Source: Octopus bimaculoides (Eukaryota). Taken from it: a DNA stretch of 42,252 nucleotides. The position numbers and the translations under genes are program-made. Of this stretch, positions 3,746-34,869 are shown piece after piece. A model generated the notes under the pieces. It worked only from the letters and a program-made list of their open reading frames with translations, had not been told where the DNA came from and made no database searches. Position 1 is the first letter of the stretch. The number at the start of each line of letters is the position of its first letter. Where the stretch lies: contig NC_068989.1 in assembly GCF_001194135.2 (NCBI RefSeq), forward strand, positions 15,708,614 through 15,750,865, given 5' to 3'.

Positions 3746-3888
3746 TGTGTGTACTGTGCCTCTGTTCTCTCTCCCCACACTCGCCCCACCGTTGCCTGTC
3801 ACCCGTTTCCCCCTCACCTACCACACATCCGCCCTGCCCCTCCAACACACCATTCTCCGAGCCTTCCGGCGACTCCTGTCCGACCTCC
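3746..3888 (+). mobile_element. Penelope-like element, RT C-terminal (thumb) fragment
   Basis: Translates with one frameshift to ASVLSPHTRPTVACHPF/PLTYHTSALPLQHTILRAFRRLLSD, matching the PLE pattern P-L(V)-x-TYHP...lq.il...f..L..D by eye. Confidence 0.6.
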
Positions 3889-4270
3889 TTTTCTGTTCAT
3901 GGCGAAGGCGGGTGTCCGGATGACCTCTGTGCAAAGACAATCCGAACACAGACAGGTGTTGTAGTGAGTAACCGGTAGAGCGGGTGTCATTGCCGAGTCT
4001 GATGTCTCGGAGGTGCTCCGCGAACTGGTCAGCCAAGCAGCGTCTCGTTTGACCGATGTATAGATAGAGATGGGTGTGTGTGTTTATAGGTGTGCTCAAG
4101 AAGCAGTTGCTGAAAAATGAAATACAGATAATGTAATGTAAATGGAGGAGGCATATGGAGGGGGTATCTATGACATTGGATTGAACAGCTTTAGTGTGTG
4201 GAGGTCTTTCATGGCTGGCTCCAGCAGTCAAGCGCGACGGCGTGGTCAAGAATTTGGTGGGGGCGTGATT
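3889..4270 (-). mobile_element. Penelope-like element, GIY-YIG endonuclease fragment
   Basis: ORF 3818..4249(-) contains YIICISFFSNC...LYIGQTRRCLADQFAEHLRDIRLGNDT...HLSVFGL...RLRHEQK, the PLE GIY-YIG signature (IYCI.C..C...YIGQT.R.L..RF.EH...E). Confidence 0.85.
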
Positions 4271-6547: not shown

Positions 6548-7042
6548 TTGAGAATTTAAAATCACTTCTTTAACTTTCTAAAAGACATCTCAACGCTTCA
6601 AAAAGCAAACTTCGTTTGTTTGTTTACGTTTATCGTAATTTGAATTTGACAAAATAATATCTTTGTAATTTTAAAATATAATCCCAAATATAAATTGTGG
6701 GTTTGCTTTTTTCTCAACTGAGCTCTAATCAGAATACGTTCTTACAGACCATAAATTATTCACTATCAATATTTGAATAATTCAAATTGGAGCCATAAAT
6801 TTTACAGATTTTACAGATTTAATCCTACTAACTAGAGATAATCATACCTTATTTAGAAAATATAATTTTTAAAATGTAATCTTTAAACTATATTGAATTT
6901 TTTTTTCATCAACAACAACAATAATGATAACATTCTTAGGGTTCGTGTTATTATTTTTAAAACAATTAACCTTATCACATAAACACATTTAAGATTATAT
7001 AGCTATTTCTAATCTAATGAGTCAACACTCTACAATGATCGT

Positions 7043-12047: not shown

Positions 12048-13073
12048 CTCGTTAAGGCGGTAAATAGAATTGACGAGCGTTTGGAAAGAGTAAAGAGTTT
12101 TGCTGAGGCTGCAGAGGTGAAGAAAAGGGAGGTGGACCTAGCCGGACTGAAGGAGCTGTGTAAGATGACACAGAAGGTGGACCCTCCGAAAAGGGTCATG
12201 GAAAATATGGAGAAGAAGACCATTACCTACAAGGTGTACTCAGTGGAGAATAGGAAGGTGGAGTGGATGGAGATGGAGAAAGTAGAGAAAGCATTGAAGG
12301 GGCTTTCGAAGGAAGTGACATACATAGCAAATGGAAATGGATATGGGATGGTGGTTGTCCAGTTTAGGACAGCGGAGGAGGCAAAAAGGCTGGCGAGTGC
12401 AACTGTAAAAACGGAGGAAGTAGTACTTCTACCCACGTACCTTGGAAAAAAGACTTCTAAGGTGAGGATAGAAGGAATTCCACCCGAAGTGGCTTGGGTT
12501 GCAGCAGCCGTCCTCGCTGGTAATGAGGAGGAGGTGGCTGTCCTCCAAGCCACAGAGACAGAGGAAGGAGGATATAAAGGGAAAACATTGGAAATCACCA
12601 TACAAGCGGAGGCGAATCAGCTGAAAAATTGGGTGGAGACGGTGACGTTGGGAGAAATAGTATTGAGAGTAAAGGGTAGAGTTCCGTGATACTTTAAATG
12701 TGAGCAAAAATGCCACATTAGAGCTTACTGCCCTCTACAGAGGAAAACAACAGAAGAAGCGGTGCTGGAGACGAAGGAGAAAGAGGAAGAAGTACAGATA
12801 GATGGAAGGAACAAGGAGGATGAATGGACAGTGACAGAAAATAAAAGGAAAAAGAGAAAGAAGAGGGAGAACAGTCAGTGTGATGTGGGACCCAAGACCA
12901 ACTCCATCCCACCCAATACCACTCAGACCCACCCTCCCCATACAGACACCAAACCCACCCACCAAGAAAAAAGAAGAAAGAACAGACACCAGAAAATTTA
13001 CAAGACCCCCTCCCCCGGTGAAAAAGGTTACGTGTACATGGAGGAGAGAGTGTTGTCACTCTGTGATGGGTAA
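12048..13073 (+). pseudogene. Non-LTR retrotransposon ORF1 (Tx1/L1-like gag: RRM-like region plus CCHC knuckle), one premature stop
   Basis: ORFs 12081..12689 and 12762..13073 share one frame. After the TGA at 12687-12689 it reads YFKCEQKCHIRAYCP (decayed CX2CX4HX4C), then an acidic/basic tail with EWTVTENKRKKRK. The N-terminal part has SFAEAA and KVRIEGIPP. Confidence 0.8.
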
Positions 13074-15602: not shown

Positions 15603-15753
15603 GAGGAGGAGGAGGAGGAGGAGGAGGGGGAGGAGAAAATTTGAGGAAAGAAAGTCGAGGTGATCACGACCATAATTAGCAAACCCTGAGACAATAATTA
15701 CATTCGGATTCCTCGTTGAAAAATGTCCTCTGCCTATTAGTGTTTTAATAACA

Positions 15754-15831
<78 letters not shown>

Positions 15832-19751: not shown

Positions 19752-20032
19752 GCCCACGGGCGTAGTGGTTAAGAGCGCAGGTTACTAACCCCAAGATTCC
19801 GATTTCGATTCCAAGCAGTGACCTGAATAAAAACGACAATAATAATAACAACACCAAAAATTACCTTAGGAATGAGAACCCAGGCTCGAAATTTTCCCAA
19901 GACACCTGATGAAGGCTGGAGGGTATATCAGCCGAAACGTTGTGTTAACAACAAACAAGATGAAGACAAATATCCATCAAATATAAATAATGTAAATAAT
20001 GTACATAATTCCTCATCTCTTAAATATAGAAC
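19752..20032 (+). mobile_element. tRNA-headed SINE family D with a Penelope-type 3' region
   Basis: A box gggcgtagtggttaag, B box gatttcgattcc (19801-19812), short A-rich linker, then a body containing ctgatgaaggc...gccgaaacgttg. Confidence 0.75.
19901..19946 (+). ncRNA. Minimal type-I hammerhead ribozyme motif (PLE-type)
   Basis: Stem I GACAC(19901-05)/GTGTT(19942-46); core CTGATGA(19906-12) plus one extra A; stem II GGCTG/CAGCC; GAAA(19934-37); palindromic helix III ACGT; GUU triplet. Activity untested. Confidence 0.75.
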
Positions 20033-20370: not shown

Positions 20371-20405
20371 ATGTTTATATTAATTTATTAATCGAATGAA
20401 TAATC

Positions 20406-20618
20406 CTTTCTACTATAGGCACAAGGCCTGGAATTTGATGGGGGGGGGGATAGTCGATTATATCGATCTCTGTACTCAACAGGTACTTATTTTATCGACC
20501 CCGAAAGGATGAAAAGGAAAATCAACCTCAGCGGAATTTGATCTCGGAACGGAAAGATTGACGAAATGCCGTTAAACATTTTGCCCGCTGTGCTAACGAT
20601 TCTGCCAGTTCACCGCCT
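20406..20618 (-). mobile_element. SINE family B, full length
   Basis: ttctactataggcacaaggcctggaatttg...ggtacttattttatcgaccccgaaaggatgaaa...gctaacgattctgccagttcaccgcct. Confidence 0.9.
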
Positions 20619-32082: not shown

Positions 32083-32420
32083 ATTATTATCAAAAGATTA
32101 TTATCAAATGTTTATTATAACTTGCGGTTTTTCTAAGATAGATGCTGTAAGAATTAATAAAAGTTTCTAATATAAACATAAGGCCAGAAATTCTGAGTGG
32201 ATTAATCGATACCGTCGACCATGGTACTTGATTGGTACTTCATTTTATACAGCCCGAGAGGATGAAAGGCATATTTGACACCAGTGGTATTTGAACTCCG
32301 AATATGAACTTTCGGAACAAATACTGCAAAGTAATCTTTCCGACAGCAATTGGAAGGTGTTTATAAGTTATTTAAAAAACACACAAAAACCGTCAGATTC
32401 ACTTCAACATTTAAATCTAC

Positions 32421-32471
32421 TTTGCCAAAATATTTTCGTCGCTTTGAGACTGCAACCTGTTCACTGACAAA
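32421..32471 (-). ncRNA. Hammerhead-like fold with variant G3-C8 core (left arm)
   Basis: Minus strand TTTGTCA GTGAACA G GTTGC agtctcaaa GCGAC GAAA ATATT T TGGCAAA; all helices are retained using G-U pairs. Confidence 0.6.
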
Positions 32472-32493
32472 ATTCCGAGCTTCATCACAGAAT

Positions 32494-32544
32494 TTTGTCA
32501 GTGAACAGGTCGCGGTCTCAAAGCGACGAAAATATTTTGGTAAA
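32494..32544 (+). ncRNA. Hammerhead-like fold with variant G3-C8 core (right arm)
   Basis: Stem I TTTGTCA/TGGTAAA (two G-U pairs); core GTGAACA plus one extra G; stem II GTCGC/GCGAC; GAAA; palindromic helix III AATATT; UUU triplet. Confidence 0.6.
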
Positions 32545-34869
32545 TTAAATTTAAATGTTGAAGTGAATCTAACGGTTTTTGTTTGTCATTTTAAATAGCT
32601 TATAAACACCTTCCACGCTGCAATTGTTTTCGTTCCAGCACACGATCTCAGATCAGATCACTTGCTATGCAAGTACATCTCCGTAAATCTTTCCGACGCT
32701 CTGACGATTCTCCCTGCTACATACAGTGAAGCATCAGGTTGAAGATAGGGAGTGTTCGTCTATTAGGATATGAATTACTAAAAGAAGTAAGAATCTCAAC
32801 ATTCACTCTTCTAGAAATTGCAAGAAATTACATTTTGTAAAATTAATAGAAGTTAACAGCAATAATATAACTTTAATCCAGTACAATTCAACTCAATAAT
32901 AATGTCACATGTTAAGTTTCTCATATAGTTTGATAGCTGATAGTTCCATTTGAACTACAGACTTTGTCAGCTGCAGCGATAGGCATGCAAATGCTCGGTA
33001 AGATATCATTATTATTTCTTTTACTCAAGGAATCTTTCGGTTGAGAAATGGTATTGTAGCAGGTAAGAATGAAGTTTTAGAGTGCTTCTGGAATTTGGAC
33101 CTGAATCAGTAATCGTTAATTCCAACTTCACAAACTTAACTATTTCATCCGGAAAAGTTGTGTATCGTGACATATCACGGAGTGAAACAGTATGTACAAT
33201 TGTATTACTTTCTCTCAATAAATGTATTATAGTAGATCAATTTCTAAATGATTGCATTTGCTTAAGCGTACAGTATCCAGTAAGGCCTGGGCCATAAGAA
33301 AATAACCAAGAGGTTTCCAGAACACCAACAGGGTATCAACGTTTAACAGAAACGATCATAATGAATATCACTGGTAACAGCTGAGATCAGTGATCGAATT
33401 GAAGGTAGTACTAAAAAATGAGTCAACAAGCTTTCTAAATATTCCTTGAATTAAAGCTAAGAATATTGTTTTCTATATTGTCTGTTTGGCTCTCTTGCAT
33501 TGTCGAGTTCCTTAGCATAATTTGCTGTTGTTTTAGAAAATTTTGCACTTCTATAAACATCAATTGAGCTCGCTATTTCATAGAAGGTACCACCGAGAAT
33601 TCCATCTGAAATAACTGTTTAAGATATTAAAAAAATGGTCTGAGAATTGGTATCGGAGCAAATAAAAGAAAAGTGCTAACGTAAGTATGAATCAATCGTT
33701 ACTAAAAAATATTTGATTAAAAATATTGACTGTTTAGGTCCAATAAAATTCATTGAAAACTTTCTATAGACAGAGTGGCATTTAGAAAATATTGATCATT
33801 AGGTTTGTAAAATTTAGACTTTCGTATGAAACATATTCAGCACTCGAAATAAATTCTATGAGCATTCTTGGTGGAAAAAAAAAAAACAACAACTTTCATT
33901 GCAACGATTTTCTCGAATTTAAGTGATGCAATCTATAGAAACTTCGTTGAAAAATTTGTGATCTGGTTGAGTAGAATAACTGGCATCAGCGCAATTATTC
34001 ATTTTTCCTCATCAGCAGGAAATATTCTTTATTTTGCATGTACGAGAGTTATCAAAATTATCAACCGTAAATCAGATGTACTACTGCTCTGCATTAGAAG
34101 CGTAGTGTTATCATATATGTAAGAACTCAACAATTGCTAATAGAAGGAATGAACAATTCATTTCATAACTGGAACAGAAGAAAAAGCTGCGGGACGCAGT
34201 CTCTTTGACAATGCTGCAGCTGGTTTAGTGGTTGTCACGTCACTCTCAAATATGAATTGGATGGAGTTGTCAGTAGCATAGAAAATAGCCTTTTGTCCGT
34301 CAACTTGAATATTTTGAAAGCAGTAAATGTTCTTGAGAAGTTGGAAGAGTGAAGCAGTAAGAGTCCTTACATAATCAGAAAAAGCACCAGCCACATAAAT
34401 TAGCAAGCCAATATGTTTTATAGAATTTAGACTTTATTTCAGAACATAATCGACACTCATAATAAATTTTATGGGCATCCTTGGTAGAAAGCGCAAGAAA
34501 AAAAGTTTCTTTTTCATAATGCAGCAATATTCTCATACTTGTAGAATAATTTGTGATCTATAGAATAATATATTTGTGTAGAATATTTCGAGTAGAATAA
34601 TATATTTGTGACCGGCATGAGCGCATTTATTCTTTTTTTCTCAGCAGCAGAATGTTTTGTGTTTTAGAAATTGGAACTTTGAGGCCTTTAAGAAGTAGCT
34701 GCCTATTAGGATCAGGTGTTATTTCATGGTATCAAATACAGTAACTAAAATAAATTGACTATTGTTTTACAAAAAAAAAAAGACATTTTTTCATGATAAA
34801 CAGTTATATTAAAATCATAGACATATGTTCGAAATGTTTAAGTATCTTCCATAAAGTTACCGAATATAA

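Follow-up and report, generated by a model that had tools for sequence, protein, structure and literature searches.

The minimal type-I hammerhead ribozymes of Penelope-like elements (PLEs) are the closest described relatives of the sequence reported here. In these motifs, a base between A9 and position 10.1, a G10.1-C11.1 pair and a palindromic 15.2-16.2 segment emerge outside the search pattern, dual motifs are found 100-700 bp from each other, one on each strand, and U3-A8 occurs as a natural covariant with about 1300 matches (Cervera & de la Pena 2014, PMC4209133). Because of this U3-A8 variant, the pair between positions 3 and 8 is known to covary in PLE hammerheads. PLE insertions are strongly 5'-truncated, often have an inverted 5'-truncated copy adjacent, and carry a 30-40-bp tail that is often one-ended (Craig et al. 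2021, PMC8557442). A purified PLE protein nicks the two target strands and extends each of them, and reverse transcription starts at two internal RNA sites, the tail being the stretch between them (Frangieh et al. 2024, PMC11167929). In the figures of that study, the hammerhead cut lies 26 bp and the start site 111-118 bp into the open reading frame, which by our subtraction places the cut about 85-92 nt upstream of the start. Hammerhead cleavage is dispensable for PLE insertion in vitro (PMC11167929). Here we analysed 42,252 nucleotides of Octopus bimaculoides (NCBI RefSeq assembly GCF_001194135.2, contig NC_068989.1, positions 15,708,614 to 15,750,865 of the forward strand; the whole stretch is called the window), in which a palindromic insertion carries one hammerhead motif on each strand, both with G3 and C8 in place of C3 and G8. 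We consider it fairly probable that this is a short PLE-type retroelement insertion in a short interspersed nuclear element (SINE), made from a template with a PLE minimal type-I hammerhead that kept a G3-C8 pair and still cleaved after U17.

The insertion is a discrete 341-bp unit (32345-32685) within an Octopus SINE, whose host copy comprises 32171-32344 and 32698-32760. An exact 12-bp direct repeat, AATCTTTCCGAC, brackets it at 32333-32344 and 32686-32697. We removed the insert and one repeat copy and aligned the joined flanks with four SINE paralogues, one at window position 20394 and three from a 20.9-kb O. bimaculoides locus around LOC106871568 (GCA_001194135.2; named L001). All four are continuous across the junction, and the duplicated 12-mer aligns to their SINE sequence CATTTCGCCCGG. 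These uninterrupted paralogues prove that the host is a SINE, that the insertion boundaries are exactly 32345 and 32685, and that the one-sided extension described below is part of the insertion and not of the host. Thus, the first-pass annotation, made from the letters alone, was right to place a palindromic element at 32345-32685 in a SINE with a 12-bp direct repeat. SINEs of the host type are abundant in Octopus. A 20-kb stretch holds several of them, which match the host copy at about 70-75% identity; examples lie at 20394-20600 of the window and at 6886-7019, 15723-15815 and 15920-16015 of L001. Since SINE copies are about 70-75% identical whereas the arms of the insertion are 92% identical, the host SINE copy is much older than the insertion.

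Within the duplication, six bases (AGCAAT, 32345-32350) form the 3' terminus of a minus-strand element copy, whose left arm extends from 32351 to 32475. A non-palindromic 14-nt centre, CGAGCTTCATCACA (32476-32489), marks the junction of the 5' ends of both copies, and the right arm of the plus-strand copy follows at 32490-32615. In a direct arm-to-arm alignment of 126 nt, the arms differ by nine substitutions and one indel; the lower BLAST identity of 89.5% double-counts the centre and every difference. An assembly artefact is ruled out by these 10 differing positions. The right arm continues into a plus-strand 3' extension or tail of about 70 nt (32616-32685), which has no counterpart on the left side, is absent from the paralogous SINE copies and folds as three small stem-loops, one of them (ACTTGC-TAT-GCAAGT) near its end. 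The left copy stops 4-13 nt beyond the palindrome, a range set by the alignment of a short palindromic CAATTG, and the right copy is therefore 57-66 nt longer at its 3' end. As one RNA strand, the whole element forms a single hairpin of -189 kcal/mol (z = -26).

This layout of inverted copies, one-sided tail and duplication agrees with published PLE insertions. The two copies are inverted with their 5' ends together, and the prior statement that inverted arrangements are common in PLE insertions is confirmed in the literature (PMC8557442). The octopus element shares with described PLE insertions (PMC8557442, PMC11167929) the inverted 5'-truncated copies, the one-ended extension, the duplication and a hammerhead just under 100 nt from the 3' end; the position equivalent to the left-copy end point follows 82-91 nt downstream of its predicted cut at 32537/8, in line with the about 85-92 nt derived from the in vitro figures (PMC11167929). 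Unlike those insertions, it consists of a unit of only about 146-210 nt, has neither an open reading frame nor a tandem pseudo-long terminal repeat, and its two copies stop within 14 nt of each other.

The right-arm motif (32494-32544, plus strand) can be read base by base. Helix I pairs TTTGTCA (32494-32500) with TGGTAAA (32538-32544). The core G3-U4-G5-A6-A7-C8-A9 occupies 32501-32507 and is followed by an unpaired G at 32508. Helix II is formed by GTCGC (32509-32513) and GCGAC (32523-32527) around the loop GGTCTCAAA (32514-32522), and G12-A13-A14 (32528-32530) leads into the palindromic helix III AATATT (32531-32536) and U17 (32537). The left arm carries the mirror motif on the minus strand (32419-32473), with G3 at 32464, C8 at 32459 and U17 at 32428. 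Helix I measures 7 bp in the right arm and 9 bp in the left; helix II has 5 bp in the right arm and is GUUGC/GCGAC with one G-U pair in the left. The three-way-junction register is correct in both arms, and helices I and II form the minimum-energy fold of the 61-nt stretches. The invariant bases U4, G5, A6, A9, G12, A13 and A14, the A15.1-U16.1 pair and H17 are intact in both arms. Only C3 and G8 are missing, both arms having G3 and C8, so that Watson-Crick pairing between positions 3 and 8 is kept. The PLE hallmarks are present as the unpaired G 32508 after A9, the G10.1-C11.1 pair (G32509-C32527) and the palindromic helix III AATATT. From hammerhead numbering, the cut sites are predicted at 32537/32538 (plus) and 32428/32427 (minus). 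Both the motif with its swapped core and these cut sites had been proposed beforehand, and the sequence, the numbering and our descriptor scan bear them out. By its base pattern, the motif is very probably a minimal type-I hammerhead of the PLE kind.

Two other features adjoin or overlap the motif. The helix III palindrome lies inside a longer one at 32526-32541 (mirror 32424-32439), which is AAAATATTTT at 10 nt and reaches 16 nt if one G-G mismatch is allowed. It shares the bases A13, A14 and U17 with the hammerhead, and could compete with the active fold or serve, for example, as a protein-binding site. In addition, the 14-nt centre reads TGTGATGAAGCTCG on the minus strand. This includes GTGATGA, which resembles a CUGAUGA box with G at position 3 and immediately precedes the left-copy hammerhead. 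We found neither a helix II nor a GAAA partner for this box, which is probably a coincidence.

Compared with the PLE minimal hammerheads (PMC4209133), the octopus motifs have the same type-I topology with an open helix I and a palindromic 15.x-16.x segment instead of a helix III hairpin, the same unpaired base between 9 and 10.1, the same G10.1-C11.1 pair, and the same arrangement of dual motifs on opposite strands, here about 100 bp apart. The description of PLEs as carriers of minimal type-I hammerheads whose palindromic helix III suits them to work as dimers, from which the first-pass annotation started, is supported by the same study. The octopus motifs differ in their 3-8 pair, which is G-C and not C-G or U-A, in their helix II of 5 bp (7-8 bp in Schistosoma families) and helix I of 7-9 bp (reported as 4-5 bp), and in being known from one insertion without a PLE reading frame. 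The same swapped tertiary pair is found in engineered C3G/G8C hammerheads (Martick & Scott 2006, cited in PMC11167929; PMC3884650), for which partial activity is reported, also in a PLE hammerhead. Those are laboratory mutants, whereas the octopus sequence is natural and has U17. Animal non-long-terminal-repeat retrozymes and the Sm-alpha elements of Schistosoma are also short non-coding mobile sequences with a type-I hammerhead, thought to depend on PLEs (bioRxiv 10.64898/2026.07.22.740005). However, retrozymes are tandem direct repeats giving circular RNAs, whereas the octopus element is one inverted pair without a tandem copy, so the earlier label 'retrozyme-like' is not supported. Unlike the SINE-like Sm-alpha elements, it shows no evident RNA polymerase III head. 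We found neither a natural G3-C8 hammerhead nor any octopus hammerhead in a literature that we covered in part, where an earlier description is possible; the natural G3-C8 variant appears to be undescribed.

We then asked how often such a motif arises by chance. A descriptor based on the literature allowed any Watson-Crick pair at 3-8 and a bulge of 0-1 base, and required G10.1-C11.1, H17, at least 5 bp in helix I and 4 bp in helix II, and a palindrome of 2-6 nt as helix III. It matched the window three times, namely at the two arms and at a canonical PLE minimal hammerhead at 19901-19946, and gave one match in all in 8000 dinucleotide shuffles of the window. A looser descriptor admitted all 16 combinations at positions 3 and 8, a helix I of at least 4 bp, a bulge of 0-2 and a loop of up to 30, and dropped the G-C requirement. 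On the window and L001 together (63 kb of real Octopus sequence) it again found only these three motifs, while shuffled windows gave 0.052 matches per window, none of candidate quality. On these 63 kb, a motif search allowing G3-C8, of the kind suggested as a check, recovered both arms. The observed fractions for a Watson-Crick 3-8 pair, for helices I and II of 7 and 5 bp or more, for a palindrome no shorter than 6 nt, for G10.1-C11.1 and for a bulge not exceeding 1 multiply to about 7e-7 matches of candidate quality per window, or about 0.04 per genome of an assumed 2.3 Gb, an estimate flattered by thresholds fixed at the candidate's own values after it had been seen. A chance match to the hammerhead is unlikely.

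These observations can be joined in the following model, in which mobilisation by a PLE and the order of events are what we infer from the layout. A PLE reverse transcriptase with its GIY-YIG endonuclease would have nicked both strands of the SINE target 12 bp apart, with both 3' ends then serving as primers for reverse transcription of a short template RNA of the same kind. One start would have been distal, giving the 57-70-nt tail, and the other proximal. The two cDNAs, each stopping just upstream of the hammerhead, would then have been joined head to head. In the template, about 82-91 nt would have separated the hammerhead from the proximal start site downstream of it, and in the source lineage G3-C8 would have replaced C3-G8 and been maintained by selection. 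This replacement would keep the tertiary Watson-Crick pair of the active site and thereby cleavage after U17, which may have taken place as a dimer through the palindromic helix III, probably helped by the protein of the element. The 5' ends fit the PLE pattern imperfectly, as both copies end just upstream of helix I. These shared stops point to a template RNA of only about 146-210 nt, in other words a truly non-autonomous unit, or to a snap-back, rather than to two random truncations. The element may be non-autonomous, or it may be an autonomous PLE with a severe 5' truncation.

Several results weigh against the interpretation as a PLE insertion with a cleaving G3-C8 ribozyme. There is a single insertion, and its two arms are not independent. 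The tail of 57-70 nt exceeds the published 30-40 bp. Both copies include 48 nt upstream of the cut and hence were not made from a self-cleaved RNA, which agrees with the dispensability of cleavage for PLE insertion in vitro (PMC11167929). No reading frame for a reverse transcriptase or GIY-YIG endonuclease was found in the element, where frames reach at most 82 aa, and the 82-aa frame across it has no relative in the protein collection. Nor was an autonomous PLE partner found in searches that reached the window, L001 and the protein collection; a protein search with a reverse transcriptase-like frame from L001 led to just two 1-kb Logan contigs. No second copy of the element was found in the window and L001 with a 40-mer allowing 3 mismatches, with blastn at word size 7 or with nhmmer, nor in the scanned metagenomes, viral contigs and prokaryote genomes, and the word 'family' in the first-pass annotation is thus unsupported. 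A 22-mer match in the AT-rich single-cell genome of a Pelagibacter had no similarity beyond the match and was rejected as chance. The Rfam hammerhead models gave no match to the element at E <= 10, and the single-arm folds did not exceed shuffles in stability (z = -0.3 and -1.8). The Rfam negative is, however, uninformative, because the canonical PLE hammerhead at 19901-19946 was missed too; these models do not cover the PLE minimal subtype.

The predicted energetics of a dimer count on the same side. Between two molecules, helix III (AAUAUU)2 would contribute about -0.2 kcal/mol, as against -3.5 kcal/mol for AACGUU (helix III ACGU with the flanking A14 and U17) in the canonical 19901-19946 motif. 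The 10-nt palindrome AAAAUAUUUU is stable (-3.8 kcal/mol) but would consume A13, A14 and U17. An explicit double hammerhead lies 11 kcal/mol above the dimer minimum, compared with 7 for the canonical motif, and the minimum-energy dimers from cofolding are trivial domain swaps, which say nothing on whether dimers form. PLE minimal hammerheads generally cleave poorly in vitro (PMC4209133) and that of Anolis is protein-assisted (PMC11167929), so by analogy the weak secondary structure would not disqualify the octopus motif from activity. Moreover, C3G and G8C combined bring back part of the cleavage activity, also in the Anolis PLE hammerhead, in which neither mutation alone leaves any (PMC11167929); this bears out the earlier argument that compensatory 3-8 swaps can rescue activity. 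A G3-C8 hammerhead variant is also mentioned as active (PMC3884650), and the discussion of G17 and C17 in that study suggests that U17 would avoid an inhibitory G3-C17 mispair. The genomic copy itself is predicted to be catalytically silent, because a transcript through both arms would zip into a hairpin of about 125 bp.

The alternative that survives best, though we regard it as unlikely, is that the source was a dead relic, in which a canonical C3-G8 PLE hammerhead had decayed and the G3 and C8 mutations became fixed in an inactive source; the PLE-type insertion would then stand. PLE hammerheads vary greatly, and single truncated motifs make up most of the copies (PMC4209133), helix III is very weak here, and a source with a dead ribozyme could still transpose, since cleavage is not needed in vitro (PMC11167929). 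Such decay would, however, require two transversions at precisely the pairing positions and to complementary bases, and would have to leave G10.1-C11.1, every helix and the rest of the core intact, which is unlikely under neutral decay. As G3 and C8 occur in both arms, the swap was present in the source RNA and both changes predate the insertion. The partial activity of the engineered double swap (PMC11167929) also speaks against a dead source.

The differences between the arms, in contrast to this shared swap, carry no weight on selection. The first-pass annotation had pointed out that those inside the fold sit in the loop or keep pairing, and this is correct: position 32511 in helix II is G-C in one arm and G-U in the other, 32514 lies in loop 2, and 32541 in helix I is U-G or C-G. 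A fourth difference, at 32545, merely lengthens helix I in the left arm. What cannot be kept is their value as evidence, because the arms drifted apart only once inserted, in a dead copy, CpG transitions (TCG to TTG and CGG to CAG) account for two of the three in-fold differences, and the pattern is not significant; in a rough hand estimate, about half of random transitions are tolerated in the fold, so that three tolerated ones have p of about 0.12.

Slightly less likely than a dead relic is a chance look-alike of a hammerhead in a foldback element, either a MITE-like DNA element (miniature inverted-repeat transposable element) or a hairpin RNA retroposed by a long interspersed nuclear element (LINE). 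The extreme hairpin character of the element would fit this explanation, as would the missing Rfam match, the unremarkable stability of the arm folds, the absence of a linked PLE protein and the choice of descriptor thresholds after the candidate had been seen. The descriptor statistics, with one match in 8000 shuffles and only three motifs in the looser scan, speak against it. Moreover, the element has no terminal inverted repeats, as 57-70 nt separate the palindrome from the right duplication, and it lacks the poly(A) or simple-repeat 3' tail of most LINE-dependent elements. A MITE or foldback DNA transposon does not fit the ends: the left arm begins 6 nt after one copy of the duplication and the right arm ends 70 nt before the other, and this asymmetry together with the 12-bp length disfavours any DNA transposon with terminal inverted repeats. 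A 12-bp duplication is not known to be typical of any DNA-transposon superfamily.

It is improbable, although compatible with a PLE origin, that the present functional unit is the hairpin, which if transcribed would be a near-perfect double-stranded RNA of about 125 bp open to Dicer-type processing or adenosine-to-inosine editing, with the hammerhead as a passenger: the hairpin is very stable, heavy editing of this type is known in cephalopods, and Rfam microRNA-precursor models align end to end (E down to 3e-15), but this reflects a generic long-hairpin character, the families are unrelated ones of plants or nematodes with scores far below gathering, and the insertion mechanism explains the palindrome without selection. 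A microRNA precursor was rejected, as MIR6140 (78.7 vs 140), MIR8675 (63.3 vs 90.8), mir-358 (37.9 vs 65) and mir-249 (32.9 vs 70) all fall short of their gathering scores, and matches on both strands mark them as generic hairpin matches.

Several other features were observed in the window. The canonical PLE minimal hammerhead at 19901-19946 (plus strand) reads GACAC/CTGATGA/A/GGCTGG-AGGGTATA-TCAGCC/GAA/ACGT/T/GTGTT, with C3-G8, a bulged A after A9, an 8-nt loop, a palindromic ACGT and U17 at 19941. About 70 nt upstream of it lies a tRNA-like head (19752-19830) with A- and B-box-like motifs, TAGTGGTTAAG ... GATTTCGATTCC. Together, head and hammerhead (19752-19946) may make up a SINE of tRNA origin that bears a PLE hammerhead and can be compared to Sm-alpha of Schistosoma. 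For this element, ARAGORN found no tRNA and Rfam no hammerhead, and neither a flanking duplication nor a second copy was found in the window and L001. A 143-aa frame at 3818-4249 (minus strand) contains LYLYIGQTRRCLADQFAEHLRDI...VFGLSLHRG...RLRHEQK and has no Pfam match. It presumably resembles the GIY-YIG endonuclease of PLEs with an N-terminal endonuclease (Naiads), an unconfirmed lead. Naiads persist only as remnants in cephalopods (Craig et al., PMC8557442). An intact 202-aa frame at 12081-12689 (plus strand) shares 80% identity with a Metaclust protein and 40% with O. bimaculoides LOC106871568, has no Pfam domain, and looks like a member of a small lineage-specific gene family or a transposon-borne gene. 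Runs of N flanked by TA/CA microsatellites occur at 7.7-8.6, 9.7-9.95, 11.1-12.0, 13.3-13.65 and 13.97-14.17 kb and elsewhere, as expected for short-read assembly gaps, and the chromosome-level locus L001 shows the same pattern.

In the full-length hammerhead structure, the pairing of C3 with G8 came as the main surprise, and swapping the two bases has served in the laboratory to test the structure. We tentatively propose, as possible rather than probable, that Octopus has a selection-maintained and catalytically competent family of G3-C8 hammerheads on short PLE-mobilised elements, invisible to searches based on CUGANGA. If the motif is instead a dead relic, the finding shrinks to an ordinary truncated PLE insertion. 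The insertion is in itself a very compact PLE signature, with both strands primed, two start sites and head-to-head joining, and could help define the minimal PLE RNA. If a natural G3-C8 family exists, evolution made the same compensatory swap as the laboratory, and G3-C8 would join C3-G8 and U3-A8 as the third natural state of the pair. Hammerheads in invertebrate genomes would then be undercounted by standard motif searches and by Rfam models, and PLE clades reported to lack hammerheads, such as Naiads (PMC8557442), may need to be re-screened with any Watson-Crick pair at positions 3 and 8.

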